Shown piece after piece: positions 1 to 64,000 of a DNA stretch of 64,000 nucleotides. A model generated the notes under the pieces. It was not told the DNA's origin and ran no database searches. It saw only the letters and a program-made list of their open reading frames with translations. The DNA comes from Blepharisma stoltei ATCC 30299 (Eukaryota > Protista > Ciliophora): NCBI GenBank assembly GCA_965603825.1, contig CBFDEM010000061.1, positions 124,001 through 188,000 on the forward strand, read 5' to 3'. The position numbers were made by a program, and so were the translations under genes. Each line of letters begins with the position of its first letter. Position 1 is the stretch's first letter.

Positions 1-3000
1 CTGTTGATACTGGCAAGCAAGAAGTTCCATATCCATAAGGGCAGCTGTTAAGACAGACTGTGCCAACTAATTGGTAGCTTCCTGAACAAGTAGAGCACTC
101 AAAATACGTATTTTTCAAGCAAACCGAGCAAAGCATATCACAAATTTCACATGTCTCTGAAGAATATATCCACAAGCTATTTTGTGCACATGTGCAGCCA
201 CCAGTCCCATCAGGAACTGCATTTGTAATACAAGTCAAGCAGGAATTCGCCCCTGTGAACGCTGTGCAGGTGGCGCATTCTTTCATCTTGCATAATCTAC
301 AAGTATCAGAATTTCTGCATCCTTTCAAACAATTTGCTCTGCAATTTGTGCAGGCAGAACCATTAAAATATTGTGATAACGGACAGCCATCCAAGCAGGT
401 AAAATCAGCAGGGCATTTAGGGCAGCTATTACTGCATCCAACTGTTGTAAAATCGCTTAATGCGAATCCGCTTTGGCAGTAGATTTTTAATGTCCATAAA
501 AATCCAGAAAATCCTAAATCATAATGTCCAATATACATAGAGCCTGATTGGCTGTCTAAAAGATAAAGAGGAGTCGCTGTTGTTGCCGCAATTAAATTAG
601 CCCCATTAGTCCAAGTTTTTATCGTTGTTGTCCCAGCAGCATTAATTTTGCACTCAAACGATACAAAAAATCACCCCTGATTCAGCAGATAGGTAGTCCC
701 TATAACAGAAATCGTCGTTGTTGTGTCTGATAACAACAGAGAAAGCTTAGCATACCCTGAGTTTAAAATCTGTACAAACCATTGGGTTGTTGACACATAT
801 TTAGTTATCACAAGTCCAGCCGCAGTCGGTTTTATCCACATTCCAATTGAAAAAGTCGGAGCAAGCATAAAAGTTGTCTTTAAATAGGTATTGTAATCAA
901 AATAATACCCTCTCAAATATGCAGGATGAGGGTCGTTGGCATCATATGTAGGATATGTATTAACATTTGACAACCCTACGTTTACTCCTGAAATAGTGTC
1001 AAGGAGAATATTATTAGAAAAAGAAAGCCCATAAGTAGTAGAAGAAAGGGTACAAGAATTCGTGGCAGAGTTGGGAAGGTAGCCTCATGGGCATTCAGAT
1101 AAACACTGGATGTTTAAAAAATAAAAGCCACTTTTGCAGCTTGTGCATTGGTGGTAGCCACTTCCTGTACAAGTTTTGCAGCCAGTATAGCAGGCAGAGC
1201 AGATAGCTTGGTTTATAGGCTGATAAAAGCCAGGGTCACATGTACATGGAGTTCCAGAAGCATTAGAAATGCATAATGTGCAAGAATTAGATGCAAAAGA
1301 TGAGCATTGGGAGCATAAAAAATCGTCACAGATATAGCAAGATGTCCCTCTAGTACAGCCTATTGTGCATGACCCTAGACAGGTTTTACAAGTGCTTCCA
1401 TCATAATAATGAGCATAATCACATGGCCATAGAGTTGTGCCTGCACTTGTATATACAGTATAAGATGCTGAAAAATCTGTAACAGTCGTTCCTCATAGCT
1501 GAAAATAGCTAATAAATCCATTAAAATTTGGTGAGCCCTTTCCTATATATAAAGTTCCACCATCTGCTAATCTGAATACATAATCTGTGACTGTAACTGC
1601 AGTTCCAGCGACATTATTAATATATGGCGTTAAAGTTGTAGCTTTATTAGCAAAGCCAACTGAATAAGAAACATAGTTCCAGGTGTTTAAGGTTATAGAT
1701 TTTGATGCTGAGTTGCTTGCGGATGTCCCGTCTCATTTTTCTAAATCAAAATTAATAGTCCCACTTAAGCTGATAGTAAGCTTATTACTGCTATGGCTAA
1801 TTATAGTCCCTGAAACAGCAAAAACCCAAATCCCCATGCTCCAAGTATTAGAAAGATTTATAGACCCAGCTAAAAACTGGTTAGAATTAAAATAAAGGCC
1901 TCTATTTTTTGCTGGAAATGGGTCATCTATCTCAGGAGAGTTTCAATAATTATAGCTGCTAGAGCTTGTCCCAGTATTAAACACAGACCCATAAACTCCA
2001 GCAAAATTTCCTGTAAAATCTACGGTCAAAACCGCATAGCAAGAATTTCCGCAATTATACCACCCATAAGGATACCCATACAAGCAAACTCCTGCATTAT
2101 CAGGGACTCCAGTGCTACACGCAGTATTTGCCCAAGTCTGAGTGCAAGTTGTCCCTAAATGATCACAACAATAAGGAGGAAGTCCTGTATTGCATGAAGA
2201 GCAGCTCAATGGGTAATACCCTGAACAGGAATTACAGTCAGATAATAAGCAAACATTACAGATTGTCCCAGATATGCATCAAGGCCATGTAGGGCAGCTT
2301 CCATCACAGTTTACGCAAGAAGAGCCTGATAAATATTGGTTATCAATGCAATTAACAGTAGGAGTCACAGTTCCATGGGTAACTGTATAGTCAACTCGTA
2401 CCTGCAGCCAGTAAATGAACCCTCTAAATGAATTTCCTCCACTTATGTTTCCAAAAGTTCACGTGTAAGTCCCACTTGGGAAGATTATTTCATAGTTGGC
2501 TAAAGCTGCTGTTCCTATAGGGCTTCCATTCAGATAGAAAATTATATATGCTTGGGCGCAGGATGCCTGATTAAGGGCCACTGAAAGTTTCTGCCAAGAT
2601 GAATTATAAGCTGTAGTTGTCGCTCCAGTTGGTGAGACTTGAACCCCACTTGAATTATATATTAACATACTGCATTTGTAAACAGTCGTATCTGCTCATA
2701 TCCTAATATACGTAGCCGAGCTTATTTGGATATTTAAAATGTCTCCGCTTGCTAGAGGTTTTATTCATAAGTTCAAAAGGAAAAAAATACCTGGAATGTA
2801 GCTCTGGTTTGCAATCATGCTTGATGTAGTCGCAAAATAGAAGCCACGGTCAAAGGTAGGAAGAGGAGAGTTTTGTGTTGGAGATTTATATGAAATTCCT
2901 CCTGGATTAATAAATTTCTTATTAGAATCTGAAGAATCAGCTACATAAGTCAAAGTTAAATCTTTGACAGTTGATAGTTCCAATGTAAATAAGATTGCAT

Positions 3001-3205
3001 CATTTGCAGTAGCAGGCTTGCTGCAATAGTTTTCACATGAAGGGCAATTCAACTGATAATGAGAAAAAAGAGAAGGGCAGGTAGGTGCACATACCTTGGA
3101 ATCAACCATGTATTTTGAATTGTTACACACTGATCCTGTGCTATCATATGGACAAATTGGTAGGCTCAACACAATTTTGGCGATAAAAATAAGCATCAAA
3201 TCCAT
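1..3205 (-). CDS. Copy A (5' part; 3' end runs off window): giant Cys-rich/LamG-repeat surface receptor, LamG modules 1-3 visible
   Basis: ATG at 3205 gives the signal-peptide-like MDLMLIFIAKIVLSL. Track ORFs 2765-3205, 2459-2668, 1943-2209 and 671-973 are all in one phase and end at TGA. CxxC repeats and LamG motifs are present (FSIGMWIKP, WQKLSV, FYLNG). The module motif DP.PAY.RGYYF is present. Confidence 0.85.
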
Positions 3206-3763: not shown

Positions 3764-6700
3764 TTATAATTCAATTTTTCTAACTTGATTATATTGCGGA
3801 TTATTGATTTTTTTGACAATTCCTGGCTTCACAAACTTTCTTTTTATAGTTTGGTATAAAGTTTTAGAAAAAATAATTATTGAAGAAATTGTTTGAATTG
3901 CTATAATAGCTATAACAATTATGATAATAGAATCCTCGATCCCTTCTATAGCTTCTTGCCCAAAATTAAATAAATAAGCCGTTGTAGCGCTCATTATTAA
4001 GAAAATCAATATTTCAGTAATTAAATTGGTCACTTGTAAAATTTGATTTTTAAAGGGCCAGCACAAAGCTAAGTACATCATAGTTAAAAAGGAAAGAACA
4101 ATATTCACAGTCACTTCGGTCTGTGGATAATCTCTCAAGCAAACCGAGTTTATTATATAAACTAGCCTTCTAGCAAAAAATAGAAAATAGTATTGGGTTG
4201 ATACAAATCCTTTATCTGTTCGAAACTCATAAAAAAAAGTGCTAAACGAGGCAAAAAATGCTTTCTCACGGGCTTCAATGCGGAATTTATTTTTATAAGA
4301 CAACAAAAAATATACACTTGGAGTAGCTAGTAGTAATAGGCAAATAGCTAAGCACAAAGCAAAATTTGCAATTTGTGTAATATTACTAAATTCAATAATT
4401 GTAAGTCCGATTAATGCAGCTGCTCCTAACTCAAGATAGCATTGGATCCAAAACCTTAAATAAAAGGCATATTGATAATCTTTCAATCTTTTTGTAAATT
4501 TATTGCCTATCCATCTATTAGTGCATCGTGAAAAATATAAAATTAAAGGTAGAGCTGCAATTGAGCCTAAAAGCAATGTAAAATCATTTCCTTGATTTAT
4601 TAGGATTAGATTAGTATCAAATCCAAATTCTTCAGCTTGAGAGTATGGAGTATTTCCTTTGTTTTTATCTATAAAGTATGGGAAAACGTTAGGGAATAAA
4701 TTAAAAGAATTCAAATTATTCAAAAATGACCTCATTTTGCTTGAAAAAGGGATCCCTGATAAAGTCATGTAGCTCAGAATTTGCAAAGTGTTCATCAGGC
4801 TTCATAAAGAGCTTGGACTTGAATTTATAATTGATAAAGAAGCTATTACAGATACAGTTGTTTGAGATGCTGCTTGAGATTGATGTGAAACTGAATCTGT
4901 AACTGGTGAATATGATGCTGGGTCATATGAATTTAAGCTTGATGATATCTCTGATGATTTTAAGATGCCATTTGATACCGAGATCACTTTTGATAGATCT
5001 AAGAACTCAATAATAACTAAAGTACCTTTGGAAATTTTTTTAGATATTGCTAAAGAAATGTAATAGCAGGTACTATTCTTTTTTTCTAATTTATATGAAA
5101 TTTCTCCTTGATTTTCAATTCTTATAATAAAATCTGAATCAGTGAGATTTTTTGCTAGACTTTCAGAAAAAGTCAGATATAAAGAGTTATCAGCCAAAAC
5201 TGTAATTTTTGCTGAAAAATAGGCTACTATACAATTCGATGTTCCATTGTAGCCTAAGTGGCAATAGCATAGATCATTTTTAAGGCTGGCATTACTTGAA
5301 CAAGCTGTGCATTTTGTAAGAGACTCACAAGATGAGCATAAATTTGGACATTTATGATAGTGTCCATCCTCCCCTTTGAATCCGCCAGATTTAATTGGAA
5401 TACATGTATTACTTTGGGTGTCATCGAGCACATATTTATCATCACAGGCACATGAATCAGGGTTAATAGCGTGTTCTTTACAAGCTTCACAGCTTGAATA
5501 ATCACTACAGGATTCACATAATAAATTATCGCAAAGCGAACAAGTATCTCGTCAGTCTCTGCAACTTTTTGTACATTTAATATTACAGGTATAGCATTTG
5601 TTATAGGCTGGGCCGCTTCAATATTCTTTTATTTTGCAGTTAGGTATGCATACTTGGCTGATAGGACAAACACTGCAGCTTTCAGTACAAGATGTAGTTG
5701 ATAGGCTTGATATAGGTTTTAGTGCATTAAAAATCTGAATAGTATAAATAAAGCCTTGATAATAATTATAAACTGCTGAAGAGCTAATTTGAGCTCCTAT
5801 AGTCATTGTGGTATGAGGAACTATATCATTAAAAGTTCCATATCCTGTCGTCGTAGAAGAGTCAAATAACCCATTTACATAGCTTGAAATTATATTAGAG
5901 CTACTGTTCATTTTCAAAGTAAATACAATATGGCTCCATTCATTATTACTAAGTGATGCTTGCGACATATAAAAAAACGCAGCTGAGTTTATTAAAAGAG
6001 AAAATGCTGGCTTGCCTGCTATTAAAGAAATATAGTAAAGCTTTGAGTAATTGTCAGAAACATCGTGCTTTGAAATTATAGTAGAATAAGATGTTTCAGT
6101 GTTAAGCCATATAGAAATAGTGAAGGTAGGGGCTATAACCAGTTTTGGCGATACATAGGTTGAGTACTCTGGCATCCTTAAAATTGAAGATTCCCCATTA
6201 AAATAGAAACCTCTTAGGTAAGCAGGGATAGGGTCATCGGCTTCATAGTCTGGATAAAATTTTTTTGTTGATCCAGTTACAACTGGGATTGAACTAGCTT
6301 TATCATAAACTACTCCATTCAGAGTATTCAAATTTAAATCAAATATTTTTTCTTGAGAAAATATACACACACCTGCTGATGAAGAAGTATATCCTGATGG
6401 ACAGCTTGATGAGCAAAATCCTAAAATCATATAATATCCACTATAGCACGTCAAACAGTCATACCAATTAGGAGACGTACAGGATTTGCATGATGTATCG
6501 CATAGCTCACAATTTTCATTACTATCATTCCAATAATACCCAGAATTACATTGGCAGCTTGTCCCTATTAAACTTGCATTTGTTTTGCAGTTATTGCAAG
6601 TACTTGTATAGTCGTCGCATTTTTCACATATGACATCCTGGCAAAGGTTACAATTTAAATCATTTCTTACACAGCCTTTTCTTGAGCATCCAGTTAAGCA

Positions 6701-9700
6701 GGTTATGCAGCTGCTACCATTCCAATAGCTGTCTATTAAGCAGCTATCCAGACAAGTATTAGCATTATCAATTGGGCATAATGAACAAGCATTGCAAGTA
6801 CTTGACACTAAAGCACTTGATGGAATATCATTATATATTTTAAGATCCCATAAGAAGCCTTTGAAAAATGAAAAAAATGCAGAAGCATTTAGGTATCTAG
6901 CACCAATTGTAATTAAAAACGAATTTTGTAAATCAATAAATCAGCTGGAAGGCAAGCTGCTTGAAAAATCTGAATTTGAGTTTGTTTGTATGCTAATGGT
7001 TTGCTGAGGGGTAGTTCCACTTATACTAGACTTTATGAAAAGAAAATTCCATTGTAAAAGAGTTACTTCTAATAGTGGATTGGAGCTTGTGTAGGTTATG
7101 GTAGTTGAATCTTGTAGGGTCAAAGCTAGTGATGGCATTTTTCCTGTGAACTCAAAACTGACATATTTTTTAAATGTCCCACCGCTGATTTGCCCTTTAG
7201 AAAAAATAGTCCCAGTACTTGATATTGGCTTTATTCAGGTTGTCATCACAAACTTTGGAGAAAAAGTAAACAACGGTGATGAAGTATCTGTGTAGTGGGG
7301 CAGCTGCATATAAGATGACCCAGTAAAATAATACCCTCTATAAATAGTAGCTATAGGGTCTGTTGTATCATAATTTGGATAAAAATTATTATCTTTGCCT
7401 GTAAGGACTGGAATACTTGATGCTAAATCTGTCACAATGTCTTTTATTTGATGAGGCATCAGATTAAACACTAAAAAATTCGCATAGCCAGGAGCTCTGT
7501 CACAATTGCTGCCATTTATAACATATCCAGTAGGGCAAAATGGCATGCATAAAGATTGAATAAGATAATACCCTGATATACAAGTAAGGCAGCCATCAAA
7601 TTGAACTGTAGAACAATTATCACAAATAGGATCACAAAGTTCGCAGGTTTTTGAACTCGAAATCCACCCAGTTCCAGCAACACATTTGCAATGTCCGCTT
7701 ACTTTAGCAGCATTTGCAATACAACTGGTGCATTCCTCTGTAAAACTATCACAAGCCTCACATTCTTTATCTCTGCAAAGACTGCATGATAAATTATCAA
7801 CACATCCTTTATCACATCCTGATAAGCAAGAACTGCAGCTATCTGGATATGAATTAAAGGCGCATTCACTTAAGCATTGAAAATTTGATGGACATGCAGA
7901 ACACCCAGAGCTGCATGAAGAAGTTTTATAGTCATCAGCCTGGCGGCTATAAGAGTTATATATCATGACTCTAGATAAAAATCCTTCAAACCCAATAGAG
8001 CCTAGTCGTTGGTTATTTCCGACAAAAAGCTCTCCTAAGTTGACGTCTTCAAAGTATATTGAAGTTGATGTTGTATAAGAATTTATAAGTGCAGTATTAA
8101 TATAGAGATTTAAAAGCGTTTTTCCATTACTTTGGATTTGCCCTGTAAAGCTTAAAAAATGTCAGCTGTTAAATGTGCTAGTAGAAGTAGATAAGGTGGC
8201 TGATGAGGAGTCAGAAAGGATTATCAATAAAGATGGATGTCCTGAAGTGTCTATAGAAATTGTAAGAATAGGACTGTTAAGGTGGTGTTTTGACAAAATA
8301 TTCCCAGCCACAATTGGTTTCACTCATATAGAAATTGCAAAGGCTGGTGCAATCATAACTGACGACACAACATAGCTGTTTCCATTAAAATAATAGCCTC
8401 GTTTGTAAGAAGGAATTGGATCATTGGCATCAGTCCACATAGGATAAGTATTGGCGATGTCCCAGCCTACATCAAATCCAGAAACAGTATTAAGACGGAT
8501 ATTATCAGTTAAATCAAGGTTAATTCCATAATCTACCAAATAATCACAAGTATTTGACCCTTTGTTATACCCAGATGGGCAGTCATTTAAGCATTGCCCA
8601 GTTGGAGAAAAAAAGTAAAACCCTATATTGCAAGCGCTGCATTTGTTATAAGCTGTATCTGTGCAATGAGAGCACCTGCTTGAGCATGCTACACATGAAG
8701 ATCCATCAGAAGAGGTCATAAATCCTGCAATGCATGTGCATGGAGTTCCAATTGCATTGTAAACACATTGGGTGCATTTTCCTGATCCAAAACCACTACA
8801 AATTGAGCATAATGAATCTTCACAAATATTGCAATTTAGTGTTCTAACACATCCTTTGCTGCAGGAATTGCAGGATAAATAAGAAGATCCGCTTCAATAA
8901 TGAGACAAATCGCAAGACCATAAGCAGGCATGCCCTGATCCACACACAGCATTAATATAGCTTGAAAAAGAGCTGATTGGTGCATTTCAAAGCTGAAAAG
9001 AGTTAATAAACCCTTTAAACCCGGACGAGCTGCTTTTGCCAATCATTAAGTTTGTGGAAGCAAGGTCTCTATAAATATAATTTGAAATAGGTAGAGTTGA
9101 AACTATAGCATTGTTGACATAGATTGTGATAGTTGTACTACCAGATAAATATTCAAAAGTAACTGACAAATAATTCCAATCAGCAAGCGTTGTGCCTAAA
9201 GTCAATGTTTTAGAAGCCGTAGCTTGAGTAGGATCTTCCATAATAGCTGTAATTCCTGATGATGACAAAATAAGCTGAGTTTGTTTTTCTAATATATCGC
9301 CACTCGCTGTTACATATAGCCATAATCCAATAGAAAAACTATGATAAAGGAGTACCGATGTAGATGATAAAAGATAAGCACTCCCATCAAAATATAAGCC
9401 TCTCATATAGGCAGGAATAGGGTCAACTGATTCTGGAGTGTTAAAAAACTGAAAAGATGATGAACTGGCTCCTGCTGTCAAAACTCCATACGAGCCTTGA
9501 AAATCTACATTGAAAGACTCATCTATCACAGGGGTCGTTGCAGGCAAACAAGACCCTCCAAACCCATAAGGACAGCCATTTAGACAGACATTTCCAACTA
9601 ATTGATAGCTCCCTGTACAAGTTGAGCACTCAAAATAAGCTGTTTTTAAGCAATTTGAACAAATCACATCGCACTTTTCACATGATTGAGTTAAAGATAC

Positions 9701-11287
9701 CAAAAATGCATATGTATCGCAAGTGCATCCTCCATTTCCATCGCTAACGGCATTCGTAATGCAAGTCAAACATGAATCTGTCCCTATGAATGCTGTGCAT
9801 GTAGCACATTCTTTAGTCTTACATAAACTGCAAGTGCCTGAGCTTACACATCCTTTATCACAGCTTGCCATACAGTCTAAGTAAGATGAACCATATATAT
9901 ATTTATTTAATGGGCAATCACTTGGACAACTCAGGTCATTTGAGCATTTTGTGCAGGGTGATGTGCATCCTACTGTTCTCCATTCGCTTAAGTGTCAGCC
10001 ATTTGAGTTATAAATATTCAATTTCCATAAAAAGCCTGTAAAGCCTAAGCTGTCGTGCCCTACATATATATTTCCTGAAACACTGTCTTGTATATACATT
10101 GCAGTCGACGTTGTAAAAGATTGTAAGAGTGATCCATCAATATAAGAGCTTATTGTTGTGGTCCCGTCAGTATTAATATAGCCGTCAAATGAAACAAAGA
10201 ATCATCCGTTTAGAACATTAGAACCTCCTGTTACTGAAATCCTAGTTGATGAATCTGACATAAGAAGGGATAGCTTAGGATATCCTGAGGACAAAATTTC
10301 TACAACCCATTGGTATGTTGGTATAGGCTTAACTAGAACTATTCCTGCCGCCAGAGTCTTTAACCATATAGCAATTGAATATGAGGGAGAAAGCATAAGA
10401 GGCGATGTTAAATAGCTATCAGATCTAAAGTAGTAGCCACTCCATTTGGCTGGATAAGGATCGTTTGCATCATAAGTTGGATAAGTATTAGTAATTGAAT
10501 TTCCTACAGAAATTCCATCTATTATATCAAGAATAATCTGATTTCTTAAAACCACATCAAGCGTAACAAGAAAGTTTAAATCGCAGGCATTTGTGCCTGT
10601 ATTTTGTAAATATCCTGTAGGGCAATATGACAAACATAATATGTTTTGGTATGAGAAAGAGCCAGAACCACAGGTTATGCAATAAACTTGTGTTATGAGA
10701 CCAGCTATAGTAATTAGCTGAAAATTGAGCTTGGCGTCTCTATTTGCTAAATCTAGAATTTTACAAGTAAATAGAATCAGAAATGCATAAAACACAATTA
10801 AAAAATAAGGTGCATTAAAAATTTCTGAGAAAATCTTTGTCCTTGATATATAAGAATTTGAAGCTTTTTCTCAAGCAAGTGGATTTATTGATAAAACCCA
10901 CTTAAAATAATCATAAAGTGTAAATTTTTGGTTTTCTATTATGCTTGAGTCTGCATCAAAATAAAATAATTGATTAGTAGATGATATCAGGAATCGTTGA
11001 GTGCAAGATGAAGCAGGTATTGGGACAAGCAACAATTGTGGAGAATAATTTGAATTTGAGAATTTTTTTGCTGCTAAATCTTGAACAATTGAAAAATTAA
11101 ATTCAAGTGAATTAGCCTTATCTTCGCTAACTATTGTGGATAAGCCAAAGCTAATATTCGCGTCTAATCAACACAAAAGGGAGTGAAGACAAAAGTAGCT
11201 AGAATTTATTCCTCAATTATAGCTGCCGTGCAGACTAAGTAGTCAGATGAATACAGCCTTGGAGATAATAATCAGAATAAAATTCAT
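3764..11287 (-). CDS. Copy B, ~2507 aa: N-terminal leader + 5 LamG modules (3-7) with furin-like Cys-rich spacers + stalk + multi-pass TM domain
   Basis: Eight track ORFs from 3764 to 10795 are in phase and the internal ones end at TGA. The frame stays open upstream to ATG 11287 (MNFILIIISKAVFIW..) and ends in TAA TAA. LamG_3-like motifs: FTISIWLN, WSHIVFT, SYVNG, TIGAQ, YQGFIYTIQIFN. Confidence 0.85.
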
Positions 11288-12260: not shown

Positions 12261-15200
12261 TTAATTACATTGCGGATTATTGTTTTCTTTGACAATTCCT
12301 GACTTCACAAGTTTTTCTTTTATAACTTGATATAAAGTTTTAGAAAAAATAATTATTGAAGAAATTGTTTGAATTGCTATAATAACTAGGACAATTATGA
12401 TAATAGAATCCTCAATCCCTTCCATAACTTCTTGCTCAGAATTAAATAAATAAGCAGTTGTAGCGCTCATTATTAAGAAAATCAATATTTCAGTCACTAA
12501 GTTGGTTATCTGTAAAACTTGGTCTTCAAAGGGTCAGCACCAAGCTAAGTATATCATAATTAAAAAGGAAAGAACAATATTCACAGTCACTTCAGTTTGT
12601 GGATAATCTCTCAAATAAACCAAGTTTATTATATAAACTAGCCTTCTAGCAAAAAATAGAAAATAGTATTGAGCTATTATAAATCCTTTGTCTATTCGAA
12701 ACTCATAAAAAAAAAAGTGCTAAATGAGGCAAAAAATGCTTTATCACGGGTTTTAATAAAGGCCTTATTTTTATAAGAAAACCAAAAATATGCACCTGGG
12801 GTAGCTATTAGTAATATACAAAGAGCTAAACACAAAGCAAAATTTGCAATTTGTGTAATATTGCTAAATTCAAAAATTGTAAGTCCAATGCATGCAGCTG
12901 CTCCTAATTCTAGGTAGCATTGGATTCAAAACCTTAAATAAAAGGCATATTGATAATCTCCCAATCTTTTTGTAAATTTTTTACCTATCCATCTGTGAGA
13001 GCATCGAGAAAAATATAAAATTAAAGGTAGAGCTGCAATTGAGCCTAAAAGCAATGTAAAATCATTTCCTTGATTTATTAGGATTAAATCAGTATCAAAT
13101 CCAAATTCTTCAGCTTGAGAGTATGGAGTATTTCCTTTGTTTTTATCTATAAAATATGGGAAAACATTAGGGAATAAATTAAAAGAACTCAAATTATTCA
13201 AAAATGACCTCATTTTGCTTGAAAAAGGGATCCCTGATAAAGTCATGTAGCTCAGAATTTGCAAAGTGTTCATCAGGCATCATAAAGAGCTTGAACTTGA
13301 ATTTATAATTGACATAGAAGCAACTATAGATACAGTTGTTTGAGATATTGCTTGAGATTGAGATGAGACTGACTCAGTAACTGGCGAATTTGATGTTGGG
13401 TCATATGAGTTTAAGCTTGCAGAAATCTCTGATGAATTTAAGATGCCATTTGATATCGATTTTACTTTTGATAGGTCTTTAAATTGAACAGTAGCTAAAG
13501 TACCTTTAGAAATTTTCTCACTAATTGCTAAAGAAATATAATAGCATGTGTTGTTCATTTTTTCTAATTTAGATGAAATTTCTTCTTGATTTCCAATGAT
13601 TATAACAAAATCTGAAGTATTTAGATCTTTTACTAGACTTTCAGAAAAAGTCAGATATAAAGAGTTATCAGCCAAAACTGTAAGCTTTGCTGAAAAAGAG
13701 ACTAAAATACAACTCTCTATTCCATTATATCCTAAGTTGCAATAGCATAGGTCGTTTTGAATACTAGCATTATTTGCACAAGCTGTGCATTTCGTAAGAG
13801 ACTCACAAGATGAGCATAAATTTGGGCATGCATGAAAGTGTCCGTCTTCTCCTTTGAATCCGCCAGACTCAATTGGAATGCATGTATTACTTTGGGTATC
13901 ATCAAGTACATAGTTATCATCACAGGCACACGAACCAGGGTTAATAGTATTTTCTTTACAAGCTTCACAGCTTGAATAATCACTACAGGATTCACATAAT
14001 AAATTATCGCAAAGCGAGCAAGTATCTCGTCAGTCTCTGCAACTTTTTGTACATTTAATATTACAATTATAGCATTTATTATAAGCTGGGCCACTTCAAT
14101 ATTCTTTTATTTTGCAATTAGGTATGCATACTTGGCTGATAGGACAAACACTACAGCTTTCAGTACAAGATGTTGTTGATAGGCTTGATATAGGTTTTAC
14201 TGCATTAAAAATCTGAATAGTATAAATAAAGCCTTGATAATAATTATAAACTGCTGAAGAGCTAATTTGAGCTCCTATAGTCATTGTGGTGTGAGGACCT
14301 ATATCATTAAAAGTTCCATATCCTGTCGTCACAGAAGAGTCAAATAACCCATTTACATAGCTTGAAATTATATTATAGCCCTGTTCATTTCCAAAGTAAA
14401 TACAATATGGCTCCATTCATAATTATTAAGCGATGTTTGGGACATATAAAAAAATGCAGATGAGCTTATTAGAAGCGAAATTGTTGGCTTGCCTGCTATT
14501 AGAGAAATATAGTAAACAGTTGAGTAATTATCAGAAATATTATGCTTTGAAAATATAGCAGAATCGGCTGTTTCAATATTAAGCCATATAGAAATAGTGA
14601 AAGCCGGGGCTATAACAAGTTTTGGCAATGTATAGGTTGAGCACTCTGGCATCCTTAAAATTGAAGATTCACCATTAAAATAGAAGCCTCTTAGGTAAGC
14701 AGGGATAGGGTCATCGGCTTCATAGTCTGGATAAAATTGTTTTGTTGATCCAGTTATAACTGGAATTAAGCTTGCATCATCATAAACTATGCCATTCAGA
14801 GTATTCAAATTTAAATCAAATATTTTTTCATGAGAAAATGCACACACACCTGAAGAAGAAATATATCCTGATGGGCAGCTTGAAGAGCAAATTCCTAAAA
14901 CCATATAATATCCACTATAGCACGTCAAGCAATCATACCAATTAGCAGATGCACAGGATTTGCATGATATATCGCATAGCTCACAGCTTTCATTAATATC
15001 ATTCCAATAATATCCAGAATTGCATTGGCAATATGTGCCTATAAAACTTGCATTGGAAACGCATTGAGTACATTTTCCTGATCCAAAGCCAGTGCATATT
15101 AAGCATAATGAATCTTCACAGATATTGCAATTTCCAGCTCTTACACAGCCTTTGATGCATGAATTGCAGGATATATAAGAAGATCCACTTCAAAAATGAG

Positions 15201-43280: not shown

Positions 43281-43474
43281 ATTGATATGAATTTAAAAAA
43301 ACAAATTTAAAGATTCAGATAGGCTAGATTATAAATTAGGCAAGTAATATATTATGATTAGATGAGGAAGTAAGTAATTAAAGTGTTTAAATTTAGCTTA
43401 AATAGTATTGTTGCAATTTTATAATCAAAATTTATATTTGTTTTATTAAAAATCTAATTTTGAGCAACTTTATG

Positions 43475-50400: not shown

Positions 50401-50402
50401 AA
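44418..50402 (+). CDS. Copy J, ~1994 aa, inverted orientation: signal, LamG1, LamG3, LamG4, LamG7, stalk, multi-pass TM
   Basis: ATG 44418 gives MSLLFFVISQVVLTLSSCPYDS-TGA-G. Track ORFs at 44514, 45060, 45420, 46548, 47292, 48306 and 49722 are in phase. The 45629-46230 gap was read by hand and contains only TGA. Stop is TAA TAA. Confidence 0.85.
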
Positions 50403-51180
50403 TAAAACTTATCATTTTAGCTTTTATTTTGACAAAAGACTGATTCTTTTATATGAAATTATATATAATTTAATTTTTTATATGTCGAAGCTTTCTTTAA
50501 ATTCCAAATAATTCAATTTTGCATAATTATTCAGCCTTTTTATAATAATTTATATAATTTAAGTTTGAGGTATAAATTCGATATATAGCTAGCTTCAATC
50601 TAGTTACAATAAGCATCACTTATTTGAAAATTTTAATTCATGAAATTCGAATATTTTTTTAAAATGGGATTTTTGAAACGCTTCTCGGTGGTTAACAACG
50701 CTTATTTTATTCTAGTTGCTTTCAAATGAAATTTCAAAATTAAATAGGCTTGTTGAAATAAATATAAAAAAGTTGAAAATTATTTTTTTAATAAAAAAAA
50801 TTATAAATAAAGTCTTTATTTAGGAGGTATTTATTTTGGCCAATGGGTAAATTTCTATGTGCAATTCTGAGCCAGCTTTGCATTTAGATGCCAGAAAGTC
50901 AAAAGTTGTGGCTTCAAGTTGCTATTTGAATAGAATAGACTGACCAAATAATTTTAGAAATAAAAGCCAGATTAAAACAGTAAATAAAACTAATAGCAAA
51001 TTTACATTAAAGAAATTAGAAAAGTTAAAAATTATATTTAAGTCCATTAAGCTTTTAGAATCAGGAAATATATTAAAGATATATTTCCTATATTTTGCTT
51101 TCCTATTTGCTCCTCATTATAAATATTTAAGGATTTATATACCTTAAAAGTAAAATTGAATTTTATTTTTTGATTTTTTG

Positions 51181-51444
51181 ATGGAAATTTTTGAAAAAGG
51201 ATTTATGCTGAAGAACTTAGGTTTTGACTTGGAAATTGCTATGAGAATGCTGGAAGCATGTGGAGGAGATGCTGAGCTTGCATTTAGCCTGCTCCTAGAT
51301 GCTGGAACTGATGTCATGTGTGGATTGGATGATGATGTCACGGAGGGGTCACTGAGTTATGAAGATAGACAAGATTATGAATTTGAAGAGGAATTAGGAG
51401 TCAAGTTGAAGAAGAAGATGCAGAATATGAAAAAGAAAGTTTAA
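51181..51444 (+). pseudogene. UBA-like domain ORF with acidic tail inside the insertion; appears to continue through frameshifts
   Basis: MLKNLGFDLEIAMRMLEACGGDAELAFSLLLD matches the UBA pattern (LxxLGF...A...L....GD.E.A...LL). An acidic frame continues after a shift at ~51400 (QVEEEDAEYEKESLNNTGNDVDEELIEKGKGQDEDES). Confidence 0.6.
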
Positions 51445-51794
51445 ATAATACTGGAAACGATGTAGATGAAGAGCTTATCGAGAAAGGTAAAGGTCAAGAT
51501 GAAGACGAGAGTGCCGCGAAAAAGTAGTAATTGGAAAAGATGGTGATTTGAATTTTGGACGGAAAAGTGAGAAGTATGATATTGATATCTTCAAATTAAG
51601 GGCCGGCTTTAGTGCAGCATCGTATTCACAGAATTTAAGGCATTTAAGACAGAGTCCCAAATATGAGAGATGTAGGTGAAATGAGAATGAAATCCATCTG
51701 TATAATGATTGTTTTTTGAATGAAAATGAAAGAACTAATTTATTGCTGAGTTGCTACTGAGCTTGATGTGGTAGATGAAGCTGGATCTGTTGAT

Positions 51795-51942
51795 GTAGAA
51801 GTTGGAATTGTTTGGAGTTATTGGAATTGCTTAGAGTTGTTGGAATGTTTGAGTTATTGGAGTTGTTGGAATTGTAGGAGTAGCTGTAGCTGCTGCAGTT
51901 GCTGAAGTTATTGGAATTGCTGGAGTTGTTGGAGTGGTTGGA
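51795..51942 (+). repeat. Degenerate 9-bp tandem repeat, consensus TGGA(A/G)TTG(T/C)
   Basis: Directly visible: gttggaattg tttggagtta ttggaattgc ... ttggaattgc tggagttgtt ggagtggttg. It would encode W-[SN]-C on the + strand. Confidence 0.8.
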
Positions 51943-52622
51943 GAAAGCAGAGAGAAAAAAAGGGAGAAATGCTGCTAAGCAGCGTTAAAATAATTTTAAG
52001 ATATACCTTAAAAGTATTTTTCAAATTTCAAAATATTCAATAGAAAATTCCCTTTAGAAGCCCTTCAGTTCACAATTTGTTGGACCAAATTGTAATTTTA
52101 ACAGGCAATTAGCCCATTGATAGGGCTATCTATTTGAATTGCGTATAATTCAAGCAACTGTAAGAAAAATTTAAAGATTTAATTTAAGTTTAGAGTATAT
52201 AATTAGCTTTGATAACCATTATTGAAAGAAAATTTTAATTCTGAAACTTGAATAATTTTTTCTATAAATAGGATTTTTGAAATGCTTCTCAAGTGGCTAG
52301 CAACATTTACTTTGAATATTTTATTCCAATTGCTTCAAATTAAATTATTAAAATAAATAAATAATTATTTTTAATTTAACATGTTTAAAATGAGACCCTA
52401 TTTTTATTTTGACCATTTTTAGTTCAATGAGTATTGACAAATCTGAAATAAAAACCTGCAATTAAAATATAAATGTTATTAGATCTCTCCAGCAGATTAT
52501 TTTTTGCTTTTAAGCTCAAACATCTAAAACCTAAGCTTTATCAGTTTTCAACGGAAAATAATTATCATTATAGCTAAATTATAATTTTTTAAACATTTAA
52601 AGCTTCACATTTTGCTTAATTA

Positions 52623-55600
52623 TTATATTTGAATTTTTCTAATACGATTACATTGCAAATTATTGTTTTCTTTGACAATTCCTGACTTCACAAGTTTTTC
52701 TTTTCTAGCATGGTATAATGTTTTAGAAAAAATAATTATTGAAGAAATTGTTTGAATTGCTATAATAACTAGGACAATTATGATAATAAAATCCTCAATC
52801 CCTTCTATAACTTCTTGCTCAAAATTAAATAAATAAGCAGTTGTAGCGCTCATAATTAAGAAAATCAATATTTCAGTCACTAAGTTGGTTATTTGCAAAA
52901 TTTGATCTTCAAAGGGCCAGCACAAAGCTAAGTACATCATAGTTAAAAAGGAAAGAACAATATTCACAGTCACTTCGGTTTGTGGATAATCTCTTAAATA
53001 AATCAAATTTATTATATAAACGAGCCTTCTAGCAAAAAATAGGAAATAGTATTGGGTTGTTATCAGTCCTTTATCTGTTCGAAACTCATAAAAAAAAGTG
53101 CTAAACGAGGCAAAAAATGTTTTATCACGGGTTTCAATGCGGGCTTTATTTTTATAAGAAAACCAAAAATATGCACCTGGAGTAGCTATTAGTAATATGC
53201 AAAGAGATAAACACAAAGCAAAATTTGCAATTTGTGTAATATTGGTAAATTCAAAAATTGTAAGTCCAACACATGCAGCTGCTCCTAACTCAAGATAGCA
53301 TTGAATCCAAAACCTAAAATAAAAGGCATATTGATAATCTCCCAATCTTTTTGTAAATTTATTACCTATCCATCTATTAGAGCATCGTGAAAAATATAAA
53401 ATTAAAGGTAGAGCTGCAATTGAGCCTAATAGCAATGTAAAATCATTTCCTTGATTTATTAGGATTAGATTAGTGTCAAATCCAAATTCTTCAGCTTGAG
53501 AGTATGGAGTATTTCCTTTGTTTTTATCTATAAAATATTGGAAAACGTTAGGGAATAAATTAAAAGAATTCAAATTATTCAAAAATGACCTCATTTTGCT
53601 TGAAAAAGGGATTCCTGATAAAGTCATGTAGCTCAGAATTTGCAAAGTATTCATCAGGCATCATAAAGAGCTTGGACTTGAATTTATAATTGACATAGAA
53701 GCAACTACAGATACAGTTGTTTGAGATGCTGTTTGGGATTGAGATGAGACTGACTCAGTAACTGGCGAATTTGATTCTGGATCATATGAGTTTAAGCTTG
53801 CAGAAATCTCTGATGAATTTAAGATACCATTTGATATCGATTTTACTTTTGATAGATCTAAGAATTGTATAATAGCTAAAGTACCTTGGGAAATTTTCTC
53901 AGTAATTGCTAAAGAAATATAGTAGCATGTGTCGTTCATTTTTTCTAATTTAGATGAAATTTCTTCTTGATTTCTAATTATTATAACAAAATCTGAAATA
54001 GTTAGATTTTTTGCTAGACTTTCGGAAAAAGTCAGATATAAAGAGTTATCAGCCAAAACTGTAAGCTTTGCTGAAAAAGAGACTAAAATACAACTTTCTG
54101 TTCCATTATATCCTAAGTTGCAAGAGCATAGGTCGTTTTGAAGACTAGCATTACTTGTACAAGCTGTGCATTTTGTAAGAGACTCACAAGATGAGCATAA
54201 ATTTGGACATTTATGAAAGTGCCCATCTTCTCCTTTGAATCCGCCAGACTCAATTGGAATGCATGTATTACTTTGGGTATCATCAAGTACATAGTTATCA
54301 TCACAGGCACACGAATCAGGGTTAATAGCATGCTCTTTACAAACTTCACAGCTTGAATAATCACTACAGGATTCACATAATAAATTATTGCAAAGCGAAC
54401 AAGTATCTCGTCAGTCTCTGCAACTTTTTTTACATTTAATATTGCAACTATAGCATTTGTTATAGGCTGGGCCGCTTCAATATTCTTTTATTTTGCAGTT
54501 AGGTATGCATACTTGGCTGCTAGGACAAACACTACAGCTTTCAGTACAAGATGTAGTTGATAGGCTTGATATAGGTTTTACTGCATTAAAAATCTGAATA
54601 GTATAAATAAAGCCTTGATAATAATTATAAACTTCTGAAGAGCTAATTTGAGCTCCTATAGTCATTGTGGTGTGAGGACCTATATCATTAAAAGTTCCAT
54701 ATCCTGTCGTCACAGAAGAATCAAATAACCCATTTACATAGCTTGAAATTATATTAGAGCCACTGTTCATTTTCAAAGTAAATACAATATGGCTCCATTC
54801 ATAATTATTAAGCGATGCTTGAGAAATATAAAAAAATGCAGATGAGCTTATTAGAAGCGAAATTGTCGGCTTGCCTGCTATTAGAGAAATATAGTAAAGC
54901 GTTGAGTAATTGTCAGAAACATCGTGCTTTGAAATTATAGCTGAATAAGATGTTTCAGTGTTAAGCCATATAGAAATCGTGAAGGTCGGGGGTATAACAA
55001 GTTTTGGCGATGTATAGGTTGAGTACTCTGGCATCCTTAAAATTGAAGATTCTCCATTAAAATAGAAGCCTCTTAGGTAAGCAGGAATAGGATCATCGGC
55101 TTCATAGTCTGGATAAAATTGTTTTGCTGATCCAGTTATAACTGGAATTGAGCTTGCATCATCATACACTATACCATTCAGAGTATTCAAATTTAAATCA
55201 AATATTTTTTCTTGAGAAAATACACACACACCTGTAGATGAAGAAATATATCCTGATGGACAGCTTGAAGAGCAAATTCCTAAAACCATATAATATCCAT
55301 TATAGCATGTCAAGCAATCATACCAATTAGCAGATGTACATGATTTGCATGATATATCGCAAAGCTCACAGCTTTCATTAGTATCATTCCAATAATATCC
55401 AGAATTGCATTGGCAATTTGTGTCTATAATACTAGCATTAGAAACGCATTGAGTGCATTTTCCTGATCCAAAATCAGTGCATATTAAGCATAATAAATCG
55501 TCACAGACATTGCAATTTCCGGCTCTTACACAGCCTTTGGTGCATGAATTGCAGGATAAATAAGAAGATCCGCTTCAAAAATGAGACAAGTCACAAGACC

Positions 55601-57998
55601 ATAAACAAGCGTGCCCTGATCCACATACAGCATTAATATAGTTTGAAAAAGAGCTGATTGGTGCGTTTCAGAGCTGAAAAGAGTTAATAAACCCTTTAAA
55701 CCCAGACGAGCTGCTTTTGCCAATCATTAAGTTTGTGGAAGCAAGGTCTCTATAAATATAATTTGAAACTGGTAGGGTTGAAGCTACAACATTGTTGATA
55801 TAATTTGTGATAGTTGTACTACCAGATGAATATGCAAAAGTCACTGACAAATAATTCCAATCAATCAGTGTTGTACCTAAAGACAAAGTTTTAGAGGCTA
55901 ATGTTTGAGTAGGATCTTCCATAATAGCTGTAACTCCTGATGATGACAAAATAAGCTGAGTTTGTTTTTCTAATATATCGCCACTCGCTGTTACATATAG
56001 CCATAATCCAATAGAAAAACTATGATAAAGGAGTACCGATGTAGATGATAAAAGATAAGCACTCCCATCAAAATATAAGCCTCTCATATAGGCAGGAATA
56101 GGGTCAACTGATTCTGGAGTGTTAAAAAACTGAAAAGATGATGAACTGGCTCCTGCTGTCAAAACTCCATACGAGCCTTGAAAATCTACATTGAAAGACT
56201 CATCTATCACAGGGGTCGTTGCAGGCAAACAAGACCCTCCAAACCCATAAGGACAGCCATTTAGACAGACATTTCCAACTAATTGATAGCTCCCTGAACA
56301 AGCTGAGCACTCAAAATAAGATGTTTTTAGGCAATTCGGGCAAAGCACGTCACATCTTTCACATGATTGAGTTAAAGACACCCAAAATGCATATGAATCG
56401 CAAGTACAACCTCCATTTCCATCACTAACAGCATTCGTAATGCAAGTCAAGCATGACCCTGTCCCTATGAATGCTGTGCATGCAGCGCATTCTTTAGTAA
56501 AACATAAACTGCAGGTATCAGAACTTACACATCCCTTATTACAGTTTGTCTTACAGTCTTTACAAGATGAGCCATCAATGTACTTATCTAATGGACAATC
56601 ACTTGGACAACTTAAATCAGCTGAACATTTTGTGCAGGGTGATGTGCATCCTGATGTTCGCCATTCATCTAAGTAATAATTATTTAAGCAATAAATTTTC
56701 ATTTTCCAAATAAAGCCTGTAAATCCAATGATATCATTTCCTATATATGCATTCCCTGAAATACTGTCTTCTGCATATAATGCAGTTGCTGTTGTGAAAG
56801 ATTGTAAGAATGATCCATCAATATAAGAGCTTATTGTTGTAGTTCCGTCAGCATTAATGTAGCCATCAAATGAAATAAAGAATCATCCATTCAGAACATT
56901 AGAACTTCCTGTTACTGAAATTGTAGTTCATGAATCTGAAATAAGTAGGGAAAGCCTAGGATATCCTGAGTACAAAATTTCGACAAACCATTGGTATGTT
57001 GTTATAGTTTTGACTAGAACTATTCCTGCTGATTGAGCCTTTAGCCAAATAGCAATTGAAAATGTTGGAGAAAGCATAAGAGGTGATGCTAAATAACTAT
57101 TAGATTTAAAGTAGTAGCCTCTCGATTTAACTGGTCAAGGATCATTTGTATCATAAGTTGGATAAGTATTAGTTATCGAATTTCCTGCCAAAACCCCTCC
57201 CCCTTGGTTAAGAATAATCTTATTATCTAAAATCATGGCAAGAGTAACAAGATAATTGTAATCACAGGTATTTGTACCTGCATTTTGCAAATATCCTGTA
57301 GGACAATATGACAAGCATAACATGTTTTGGTATGAGAAAGAACCAGAGCCACAGGCAATGCAATAAACTTGTGCTATGAGGCCAGTTATAGTAATTAGCT
57401 GAAAATTGAGCTTGGCATCTCTATTTGCTAAATCCAGAATTTTACGAGCAAATAGAATCAAAAATGCATAAAGCACAATTAAATAATAAGGTGCATTATA
57501 AAATTCTGAAAAAATGTTTGACCTCGATACATAAGAATTCGAAGCTTTTTTTCAAGTAAGCGGATTTATTGATAAATCTAACCTAAAATAATGATTTTGT
57601 GTAAAATTTTGGTTTTCTATGATGCTTGGAGCTGCATCAAAATAGAATTCCTGATAGGGAGATATTATCAGGGATTGCTTAGCGCGAAATGAAGCCGCGA
57701 TTGGAATAAACAAATTTTGAGGATAATTATTTGAGTATGAGAAATTTGTAGCTGCCAAATCTTGAACACTTGAAAAATTCATTTCAAGCGAATTTGCCTT
57801 ATCTTCGCTTAGTATTGTGTAGATGCTGAAGCTAATATTCTGGCTTATTCAACTAAATAGGGAAGGATTTGCTTTTAAGCAGTCAATTTTATGTTTAAGA
57901 TAAAAGTGAACAGGCTTTATTCCTCAATTATAGTTGCCATGTGGACCAAATGACCAGATGAGCACAGCTTTGGAGATAATAATCAGAATAAAATTCAT
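52623..57998 (-). CDS. Copy K, ~1791 aa: short form (leader, LamG3, LamG4, LamG7, stalk, multi-pass TM)
   Basis: Track ORFs from 52623 to 57782 are in phase and the frame is open to ATG 57998. It is positionally equivalent to copy E. Stop is TAA TAA. Confidence 0.85.
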
Positions 57999-58467: not shown

Positions 58468-61400
58468 TTAGCTATCTGCCGGAAGTATTTTTGCTTTATC
58501 AATATTTCCAGTGTTGAACCTAACTCTAAAAAACTCATATACAGTCCTAACAAAAATAGTTATTGAAGCAAGCAACTGAGCCCCTATTATTATGACAATA
58601 ATAATCACAATACAATTTTCAATTTTAGACATCACATTTGGCTCAAGATTAAATAAATAAGCAGCTGTACTGCCCATTATTATACATATTAATATTTCAG
58701 ACACTAAGTTGCTTAATTGCAATATTTGGTCTTTAAAAGGAGAATAAAGTAATAGGTGCATGATAGTCATTAAGGAAAGCACAATATTAATGGTCACTTC
58801 TGTTTCTGGGTAGTTTCTTAAATAGATTAAGTTTACTATATAAATAACCCTCCTTACAAAAAATACAAAGTAATATTGGGTTGTGAGAAATCGGTCAGTT
58901 CTAAACTCATAAAATAATGAGCCAAAAGAGGCAAAAAATGTTTTTTGATGTAATAAGATTCGATTTTTATTTTTATAGGAAAATGCAAAAAATAATCCTG
59001 GAGTAATAATGAGTAATATGCCGACTGATGCACAGATAATAAAATTGATTATTTGTGTTGCGTTAGTAAACTTTAATTCGATAATTCCTATACAAACTGC
59101 AGCTCCTAATTCAAGATAGCATTGAATCCAAAATCTCAAATAAAATGCAAATTGATATGATTTTAAAGTTTTTCTAAGCTTATTACCAAGCCATCTCTGA
59201 GAACATCTCGAAAAATAAAAAACTAATGGTAGAGCTACAATAGAAGTCAATATCAATGTAAAATCATTGCCTTGATTTATCAAAATTAGATCAGTCTCAA
59301 ATCCAAAATCCTGAGCTTGAGAATATGGTGTATTTCCTTCTTGTTCATCTATTAAATAAGAAAACATATTTGGAAATAAGTTAAAACTGTTCAGATTATT
59401 CAAAAACGCTCTTAGTTGGCTAGAAAAAGGAATTCCAGATAAAGTCAAATAGCTAAGAATTTGCAATGTATTCATAATGCTTCATAAAGAGCTTGGATTT
59501 GGGCTTATAAATGATGATGCAAGAGCTGCAGCAACTGTAGTTTGCGTTATTGCCGTTGCTTGTGATGTAGTTGCTGCAATATCTGAGGAATACGGATCAG
59601 GATCATAAGAATTCAAAACCACAGAATAATCTGATGATTTTAAGATGCCATTAGACACTGATTTTACTTCTTTTAGATCTAAAAACGTCAATTTAGCTAA
59701 TGTGCCTTTAGAAATTTTCTCTTTTATGTTCAGAGAAATATAATAAAAGGTACTATTTACTTGCTCAATTTTACATGCAATTTCTCCTTGCTTTTCAATT
59801 ACTACTATAAAATCATAGACTCTAAGATCTTTGGCTAGGCTTTCTGAAAAGGCAAGGGAGAGGGAATTATCAGAGAGAACTGCAAGTTTGGCTGAAAAAG
59901 GAACCAATATACACGCTTTGATACCATTGTAGCCTAGATTGCAATAGCAGATATCTGTTTTGAGGCTAGCATTTTCTACACAAGCTGTGCATTTTGTAAC
60001 AGATTCACAAAGAGCGCAGAGGTTTGGACAGGGATAAAAGACTCCATCAGGACCTCTAAACCCGCCTTGTGCTATAGTAATACAAGTGGTGTTATTTGGA
60101 GTTCCTAGCACATGATTATCATCGCAGATGCATGAGTCAGGGTTTATAGCATTTTCTTTGCAAGTCACGCATTCTATTAATGAATATCCAATACAGTCTT
60201 CACATAATAAATTATTGCAGAGTGAGCAGGTGTCTCGTCAGTCCCTGCAAGACTTTTTGCATTTTATATTGCAATTATAACATTTATTATAAGCAGGCCC
60301 ACTCCAATATTCATATATTTTACAGTTTGGGATGCAGATTTGGTTTGTTGGGCAAACATTGCAGTTTTCATTACACAATTTAGTAGACAGGCTTGATATT
60401 GGTTTTATTATGTTAAACATCTGAATACTATAAATAAAGCCTTGATAATAATTATAAAGTCCTTGTGAGCTAAGTTGGGCTCCTATAGTAATTGTAGTGT
60501 GAGAAACCGTATCAGTAAATGCTCCATAGCCTGTAGTCAAAGAGGAATCAGATCGCCCATTTATATAGCTTGACATTATATTATAGCCGTTATTTGGTTC
60601 TAGTGTAAATACAATATGGCTTCATTCATAATTATTAATCAAGGCTTGAGACTGGTATATGAAAGGAGATGAACTTATAATCAATGAAATTGCTGGCTTA
60701 CTGCCTATTAACAGGATTGAGTAAAGCACTGAAAAATTGTTAGTAATATCATGTTTCGATAACAGAGCAGAGGAAGAAATTTCTGTATTAATTCATATAG
60801 AAATTGTGAAGGCAGTCCCAATTAGAAGATTTGGAGATGTATAGGTCGAATACTCAGGCAGCCTTAAAACTGAAGATTGCCCATTAAAATAAAACCCTCT
60901 TAAATAAGCAGGGATAGGATCATCAGCTTCATAATCTGGATAAAATTGTTCAGATGACCCAGTTATGACTGGGATTGAGCTTGCTCTATCATAAATGACT
61001 CCATTCAGAGTATTAAGGTCTAAGTCAAAAAAATTTTCTTTGGCCAGCACACATCCACTTGGAGAAGAAGAATATCCTACAGGACACCCAGCTTTACAAA
61101 CTCCTAAAGAACTATAATATCCATCTGCACAGGATAAGCAGTCCAAAGAGCTAGAAGATGTGCAGGTTTTGCAAGAAATATCACATAATTCGCAGTCTTC
61201 ATTAATAGTGTTCCAATAATACCCAGAATTGCATTGGCAGTTTGTGCCTACTAAATTTGCGTTTGTTTTGCAAGTAATGCACGTATTTGTATAGTCGTCA
61301 CATACTTTGCAGATAACGTCTTTACATAAGTTGCAGCTTTTATCACTTCTTACGCAGCCATTTGCAGAGCATCCAGGTAAACAAGCTACACAGATGCTGC

Positions 61401-64000
61401 CATCAAAGTATTTGTCCAAACCACAATTATCAATACAAGCATTGCTATTATCAATAGGGCAGAGAGAGCATGAATTACAAGAACTTGAAGCTAAACTACC
61501 TAATGCTATTGGTGTATTATAGATTTTTAGATCCCATAAAAATCCAGTAAAAAATGACACTAAAGATGTAGGGCTTGAATGGCATGCCCCAATTGCTATT
61601 AAAAATGAATTTTCTAAATCATTCAGTCAACTTGGTGCTAAATCGCTTGACACATCACTTGCTCCATTTAGAGATAAAGTTATAGTTTGTTGAGGAGTAG
61701 AGCTTATGCTGGAAATTGCTGATATAAAATTTCATTGAGAAAGGGTAGCCTCTAATGAGGGATTAGAGCTTGTATAAGTAATTGTGGATGAGTCTTTTAG
61801 AGTCAAAGTAAGAGATGGATATTTGCTTATTAGTTCAAGACTAATCGATTTTTTAAATAATCCGTTGTTAGCTTGCTTAGAAAAAATAACCCCAGTGCCT
61901 ACTATTGGTTTTATTCAAACTGCTATAGTAAATTTTGGTGCAAAAGTTAGTAGTGCTGTCGTAGTACCTGCATAAGGAGGCAGCTGCATATAAGATGAGC
62001 CAGTAAAATAATAACCTCTATTAATAGTTGCTATAGGATCAGCTGCATCATAATTAGGATAAAAACTATTATCTTTGCCTGTAAGTACTGGTATATTTGA
62101 CTTTAAATCGGTAACGACATCTTTTATTTGATGCGGCATCAAATTGAATACAAAAAAATTGGTATAAGCAGGATAAGCATTACAATTGCTACCATTTATA
62201 AAATATCCAGTAGGGCAAAATGACATACACAAAGATTGAATCAGATAATACCCTGATATACAAGTAAGGCAGCCATTAAATTTAAGTGTAGAGCAAGATG
62301 CACAAATTGAATGGCAAAGCTCACAGCTTTGGAAGTTGGGAACTCACAATGCATTTGCAAGACACATACAATGACCAGCTGATTTATAAGCATTTGTAAT
62401 ACAGCTTGTGCATTCTCCTGAAAAAGTAGTGCATGATTCGCATTCTTTATCTCTGCAAAGGTTGCATGATAAGTCATTAACACATCCTTGGATGCAGCTA
62501 GAGCAAGCTATACAGCTATCAGGGTATTTATCGAAATCGCATTCACTTAAGCACAAATGATTTGATGGACAAGCAGAGCAACCAGTCACACATGAAGAAG
62601 TCGCATAATCATCAGCTTGGTAGCTATACGAGTTATATATTATTAATCTTGCTAAAAAACCGTGAAGTCCTGAAGTTCCAAAAGTTTCATCATTTCCTAT
62701 ATAAAGGTAGCCTAAAATGGTATCTTTAAAATAGGTCAAAGAAGTAGTTGTAATAGAGCTAGTAGATACTGCATTGATGTAGAAATTAATAATGGTTTTT
62801 CCATTAGACTGGACTTGGCCTGTAAAGCTTAAGAAATTCCAACTGCTTAAAATACTTGTAGAAGCTGTTAAAGTTTTAGAAGTTGAATCGGAAAATTTTA
62901 TTGAGAGGACTGGAAACCCAGATGAGTCTACAGTTATCTTAAAAATATCGCTCGAGATGTACTTTGTTACCAATATTCCACCTGAAAGTGGTTTAGTTCA
63001 TATAGAAACTGCAAATGATGGCGCTATCATTACAGTCGATGATAAATATTTGCTGAATTTAAAATAGTAGCCTCTTTTATAAGCTGGAATTGGATCATTA
63101 GCATCAAAATTTGGATAAGTATAAGCATTATTAATACCTACATTGAACCCAGAAACCGTATCAAGACGAATCTGGTCTGTTAAATCCAGGCTTATTCCTA
63201 TATTTGATACATAATCACATGCATTTGTGATTGAATTTTTAATATACCCCGATGGACACTCACTTAAGCATTGTCCAGTTGAGGCAAACAAGAAAAACCC
63301 TGATATGCATGCAGTGCATTTATTATAAATCGAAATAGTACATAGAGAGCACTCGCTTGGACATAACGCACATGAGAGTCCATCTATAGAAGCCCCATAG
63401 CCAGGATTGCAAAAGCATGAACCAGAAACCAAATGAGCGCTAGAAATGCATTGAGTGCATTTTCCTGCTCCAAACCCTATACAAACTAAGCATAATATAT
63501 CATAACAAATATTGCAGGAATTTCCTCTAACACATCCTTTAGTGCATGAGCTGCAAGATAGGCAAGAAGCACCATTTTGATATGCTGAGAATAAACAAGT
63601 TGATAAGCAAGAAGATTTTAATCCAGCCCCACAAAATGAGAAGCCATTAAGGATACTTAAAAAATCACTAATTCTTACATTCCACAGCTGAAAAGAATAT
63701 AAAAACCCAACAAATCCAGAGCTGTTGCTTTTTCCCAATTTCAAATTAGTAGATGATTGGTCTCGAAAAATCAAATTAGGGTTGCTTAATGAGTTCACTA
63801 AATTTCCATTGACATAAATTTCAAAAATAGTCGTACTTGATGCGTAAGCTACTACGACTGATACGTAATTTCAAGCTGCGAGCAAAATACTTTGTGCTAA
63901 TGAAATTCATGACTCTACTTGCATATTATTTTCCAGTTTTACTCTCATAGATCCATCTGATACTATTTGTAGCTTATTTTTCCTTATAACAGTGTCATCA
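58468..64000 (-). CDS. Copy L (3' part; 5' end off window): long form, close paralog of F, LamG4(end)-7 + stalk + TM
   Basis: Track ORFs from 58468 to 63798 are in one phase and colinear with F 30329-35920. TAA at 58468 gives a shorter cytoplasmic tail than F. Confidence 0.85.

Follow-up and report, generated by a model that had tools for sequence, protein, structure and literature searches.

An array of genes for giant LamG/Cys-rich membrane proteins, putative surface receptors, on macronuclear contig 61 of Blepharisma stoltei

Why does a ciliate keep, side by side, about a dozen related genes for giant membrane proteins with different sets of ectodomain modules, and how did these sets arise? 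The question is raised by positions 124001-188000 of contig 61 in the macronuclear (MAC) genome of Blepharisma stoltei (41.46 Mb in 64 contigs), a stretch of 64,000 nt referred to below as the window. Contig 61 is 298 kb long, begins with CCCTAACA telomere repeats and is mostly occupied by the giant-gene array. The array is real and large, forms part of a wider heterotrich family and is apparently undescribed; we are almost certain of the anatomy of the family and of its origin in the germline.

In B. stoltei, UGA encodes tryptophan and introns are 15-16 nt long (PMC9942806). With TAA and TAG as the sole stops, 13 long open reading frames (ORFs) extend over most of the window, whereas under the standard code they fall apart into 48 pieces, none longer than 477 aa. 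The TGA codons fall in tryptophan columns of the family alignment, which bears out the original prediction, made from the sequence alone, of a ciliate reading TGA as tryptophan. The family genes in the window are intronless and encode 1,800-3,000 aa, and the annotated protein P0002 is identical to the single ORF of gene A. Full-length family proteins, labelled as B. stoltei, are thus already present in NCBI and UniRef under automatic names, and not missed by annotation as had been supposed. The protein plan comprises a signal peptide, three to seven units of a laminin G-like (LamG) module followed by a CxxC linker, an immunoglobulin (Ig)-like domain, about nine transmembrane (TM) helices and a short tail of about 35 aa without any enzyme domain. 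The Ig-like domain and the helices are called the anchor below. The window contains:

1-3205, minus strand: gene A, 5′ part with modules 1, 2 and 3; the full gene (2,990 aa, modules 1-7 and anchor) extends to the left and is cut off by the window edge
3764-11287, minus strand: gene B, 2,507 aa; N-terminal extension, modules 3-7, Ig-like domain, nine TM helices
3860-4849, minus strand: membrane domain of B, FLC/Pkd2-like (PF06011-like), about nine helices
4910-5224, minus strand: juxtamembrane Ig-like beta-sandwich of B
12261-17100, minus strand: locus C, probable pseudogene; partial 3, 4, 7, anchor; two frameshifts
18250-23604, minus strand: gene D, 1,784 aa; extension, modules 3, 4, 7, anchor
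24550-29916, minus strand: gene E, 1,788 aa; extension, modules 3, 4, 7, anchor
29100-29215, minus strand: variable head of the distal LamG module of E
29287-29916, minus strand: N-terminal extension of E, about 200 aa
30329-39355, minus strand: gene F, 3,008 aa; modules 1-7, anchor
38495-39157, 37562-38194, 36551-37198 and 35501-36151, minus strand: LamG modules 1-4 of F
34484-35134, 33380-34081 and 32267-32965, minus strand: LamG modules 5-7 of F
39590-41986, minus strand: gene G, 798 aa; modules 1, 2 and the start of 3, then a stop; no anchor
42473-43993: degraded remnants, H (module 1, minus strand) and anchor fragments at 43480-43993 (plus strand)
44418-50402, plus strand: gene J, 1,994 aa; modules 1, 3, 4, 7, anchor
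52623-57998, minus strand: gene K, 1,791 aa; extension, modules 3, 4, 7, anchor
58468-64000, minus strand: gene L, 3′ part, F-type and 92% identical to F; modules 5, 6, 7 and part of 4 of a full 1-7 gene cut by the window edge, with a frameshift in the 5′ end beyond it

Eleven loci and the anchor remnant at 43480-43993 make 12. The earlier count of at least 12 related loci therefore holds, but the membrane anchor assigned to all of them is absent from G and H. The proposed module map was recovered in a tree of 36 LamG modules and by identities to the F modules, except that C carries partial 3, 4, 7 rather than just 4 and 7, and G carries a partial module 3 beside 1 and 2. The frameshifts of C lie at about 14390 and 12700, and there is an internal deletion within its module 3. 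The second frameshift could be a single homopolymer assembly error. The DNA directly past the stop of G (39400-39590) resembles the Cys linker that follows module 7, which means that one large deletion took modules 3-7 from G; the gene is a deletion remnant, either secreted or dead.

We examined 258 kb of contig 61, in which 25 long family ORFs and two broken loci make up 79% of the DNA. The forms present include 1-7; 1,2,3,4,3,4,5,6,7; 1,3,4,3,4,7; 1,2,5,6,7; and 3,4,7. The 142 modules group into five classes (1, 2/4, 3/5, 6 and 7), and therefore the seven-module form holds an old two-module duplication. Free module shuffling, as originally proposed, was not found: the order is constant in all forms without any permutation among the 142 modules, and length variants are in-register losses or duplications of whole units with junctions at equivalent sites in the Cys linkers. 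The join of module 4 to module 7, for example, corresponds to 2,178 bp of B. The birth-and-death evolution proposed at the same time is supported by the pseudogenes C and H and the truncated G.

Regarding the ectodomain, the predicted LamG fold was confirmed by profile and by model. PF13385 matched gene A in five stretches with 157.9 bits (cut-off 27.6), and the predicted structure of one unit is a LamG/ConA antiparallel beta-sandwich. Gene A contains 50 CxxC motifs, so the Cys linkers are present as described, but the furin-like profile PF15913 stayed below its cut-off on this gene (20.9 versus 28 bits) and the linkers are furin-like by resemblance only.

The anchor unit consists, in predicted models, of an Ig-like domain and nine TM helices. 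It superposes on a fungal FLC/Pkd2 model with a TM-score of 0.69, and PF06011 matched 10 of 64 anchor kin, one paralogue from the same genome being over the cut-off; the PF06011-like nature suggested earlier thus gains support through kin and predicted fold. Polar residues inside the membrane domain are invariant across distant kin. The fungal FLC proteins and S. pombe Pkd2 (PF06011 and PF14558) likewise combine an extracellular Ig-like domain with about nine TM helices. Yeast Pkd2 is a stretch-activated calcium channel. Unlike FLC/Pkd2, the Blepharisma family has up to 13 LamG/Cys units in front, the tail of about 35 aa and 60-80 copies, and its Ig domain is not matched by Pfam TRP_N (PF14558 hit no member of the anchor alignment); neither is it a canonical 6-TM TRP. 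About 30 of the 60-80 anchors in the genome lie on contig 61, with further clusters on contigs 6, 12, 29, 40, 43, 63 and others. The contig-61 anchors form a single clade (FastTree support 0.995), two members having been assigned to the contig through matching scores. We noticed that all intact contig-61 anchors are free of in-frame TAG, whereas nearly all close relatives (contigs 2, 6, 12, 24, 29, 40, 48, 63) have one or two and span slightly more; on this indirect evidence, these are probably tiny introns that the founder of the contig-61 copies has lost.

Stentor coeruleus and metagenome contigs share this architecture, and the two examples checked there are single genes. Heterotrich UniRef entries named 'TNFR-Cys / Laminin G domain-containing' (Stentor SteCoe_20140/20141) share the LamG, CxxC and anchor plan and are the family itself, of which contig 61 holds a Blepharisma-specific clade. 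We found no published description of the architecture in the literature, and the database names are automatic. The nearest described analogues are bodonin of Bodo saltans, proposed to adhere to prey (PMC4728078), and DGF-1 of T. cruzi (PF11040), likewise clustered multi-copy giant surface proteins with 7-9 C-terminal TM helices and with pseudogenes; their ectodomains are Ser/Thr-rich or autotransporter-like instead of LamG/CxxC. Language-model features tie the anchor to DGF-1_C (score 0.90). A PF11040 search of the B. stoltei genome gave no match, and its control was blank too. Metazoan LamG tandems (neurexin, agrin, laminin G) are single-pass or secreted with other spacers, and the likeness is probably convergent.

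Informative sites among paralogues are clustered. We counted 46 runs versus 68 expected in D/E/K/K2 and 75 versus 110 in F/L/M/g096, and in neither set did any of 10,000 shuffles give so few. The paralogues are mosaic, in tracts that conversion or crossover predicts, as the claim of gene conversion had anticipated. The ratio of non-synonymous to synonymous differences per site (pN/pS), obtained by pairwise counts on few and non-independent sequences, is about 0.3 (0.2-0.35) for the membrane and Cys regions and for most of the LamG ones. In the distal module of E-type genes it rises to 0.83 (0.56-1.27), while J module 3 reaches 0.75, F module 2 0.68 and F module 4 0.62. The distal patch singled out as hypervariable (29100-29215) is indeed variable among D/E/K/K2, but pS is raised together with pN (both 0.18; ratio 0.98, confidence interval 0.50-2.32), and positive selection does not follow. 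No region has pN/pS significantly above 1, all intervals including or lying below this value. Selection is mostly purifying and weaker in certain LamG modules, whose variation is explained by relaxed constraint or conversion from distant paralogues just as well as by diversifying selection. The orphan N-terminal extension, private to seven contig-61 copies (E, with equivalents in B, C, D and K), has a pN/pS of 1.1, three hydrophobic segments and indels that are all multiples of three, keeping the frame; it may fix the ectodomain at both ends.

We compared assembled contigs of sequencing runs with 6,000 nt of the window (27001-33000). DNA run X1 covers this part fully, with paralogue variants. 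Run X11, probably a second strain, is about 3-6% diverged; one of its contigs spans the stop of F and the start of E, and others run unbroken for up to 1,187 bp, although from the reference a break would be expected every 100-190 bp, a pattern suggestive of fewer close paralogues in that sample. Two further runs, whose RNA nature is a guess, gave exact contigs on F and diverged contigs on E, and none on the E-F spacer, the first kilobase of E or the N-terminal extension. Low-level transcription of the family is probable.

On balance we lean towards the family being putative giant surface receptors or adhesins, expanded in Blepharisma and acting as receptors or sensors. The ectodomain would serve as a long multivalent antenna whose targets are glycans or proteins carried by prey, substrate or other cells; the more variable LamG modules would tune specificity, and binding or pull might be relayed to the Pkd2-like unit and possibly let in Ca2+. 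Length variants, tract exchange and copy loss would come from unequal crossing-over and gene conversion in the micronucleus. Several points weigh against this assignment of function. LamG folds also serve in protein binding or as structural elements. The window's own anchors had no PF06011 match in the profile search, the link to that family being transitive and drawn between predicted models, and a search for a solved structure of the anchor family found none. Support from expression is thin.

The proteins could instead be a structural surface coat or a cyst or extrusome part, the nine helices a mere anchor and the copy number dosage or drift in an unstable array. We consider this unlikely, yet it accommodates the mostly purifying selection with no pN/pS above 1, the short tails and the many broken copies, and the anchors of DGF-1 are described as anchors only (PMC9967923). 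The low depth in the probable RNA runs speaks weakly against a coat, as contig depth cannot rank expression, and the invariant polar membrane residues suggest more than an anchor.

We are more doubtful still about a dedicated repertoire for self/non-self, mate or pathogen recognition, under diversifying selection and with stage-specific or mutually exclusive expression. The pN/pS of 0.6-0.8 in some LamG modules (0.2-0.35 elsewhere), the mosaicism and the likely smaller number of close paralogues in the second strain would fit it. It might include the receptor of gamone 1, which is still termed putative (PMC10892320). Ciliate mating-type proteins also combine furin-like repeats and TM helices (PMC7786109): in Tetrahymena MTA/MTB and Paramecium mtA, furin-like Cys repeats precede C-terminal TM helices, as here. 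However, by their description these have five TM helices and a single Cys domain, come in head-to-head pairs and are selected somatically by joining and deletion, none of which is seen in the Blepharisma family. The absence of pN/pS significantly above 1 also argues against such a repertoire, some of the raised modules are not distal ones (F modules 2 and 4), 60-80 genes are more than two mating types need, and related genes occur across heterotrichs.

As ciliates edit their genomes, the module sets might also be made somatically, by alternative excision of internal eliminated sequences (IESs) in a V(D)J-like manner. The combined MAC+IES record GCA_914767885.1, stitched over 89 kb of MAC sequence including the whole window, adds 84 IESs (29.9 kb) and is otherwise colinear with the MAC, but it was built on the MAC reference and colinearity alone is not independent evidence. 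A tblastn search of the 84 IESs with family protein gave no match, hence no module inside an IES, and no IES in a short gene exceeds 660 bp, versus the 2,178 bp required to hide two modules. Five IES sites are common to E and K, where the sequences are related yet diverged. Several are also shared among F, L and M, and one between J and J2. IESs common to paralogues mean that the duplications occurred in the germline, and together with the lack of modules in IESs they place the diversity in the germline. Somatic excision is already largely refuted and very improbable, and the somatic side of the proposed immune-type repertoire is unsupported in the region checked. The family would rather be an inherited, slowly diversifying sensor set, similar to bodonin. 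In the same record D and K2 (contig 61 105836-111238) have no IES, versus the five shared by their close paralogues E and K; they may be germline copies that arose without IESs (soma- or RNA-derived), or else IES calls were missed through read mis-mapping. Many IESs contain an element of about 385 bp, in some cases nested within an older IES that paralogues share (E 660 bp versus K 280 bp); it is probably the miniature inverted-repeat transposable element (MITE) described for the B. stoltei germline.

That the array is an assembly artefact of collapsed or expanded haplotypes, the refutation envisaged by the original prediction and suggested by the near-identical repeats, is hardly credible and refuted on present data except for single homopolymer frameshifts: the closest paralogues are 91.5-95% identical in a strain with a heterozygosity of 3e-5 (bioRxiv 10.1101/2021.12.14.471607), each has its own diverged IESs, their variants appear in short-read contigs, and the F-E junction recurs in the diverged sample.

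Blocks of unrelated genes, some duplicated, break up the array at contig 61 87594-96370 and 23552-34013, and two such blocks (44758-47418 and 95468-96370) begin alike. Between J and K lies a GC-richer insert (window 51137-52016) with a flanking 16-nt direct repeat and, at 51801-51943, a 9-nt tandem repeat; close by lies a cluster of several IESs, including one of 3,165 bp.

The diversification mechanism itself is ordinary. The family is a concrete candidate set for the question of how free-living ciliates discriminate prey, kin and mates. In its boldest and rather improbable form, the proposal would make these genes ligand-tethered mechanosensitive Ca2+ channels that unite a variable multi-lectin antenna and a Pkd2-type unit in one chain, 60-80 inherited sensors separating prey, kin and mates and triggering feeding or pairing. 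More broadly, the comparison suggests an FLC/Pkd2-type nine-helix unit as a common base of giant variable ectodomains in protists.
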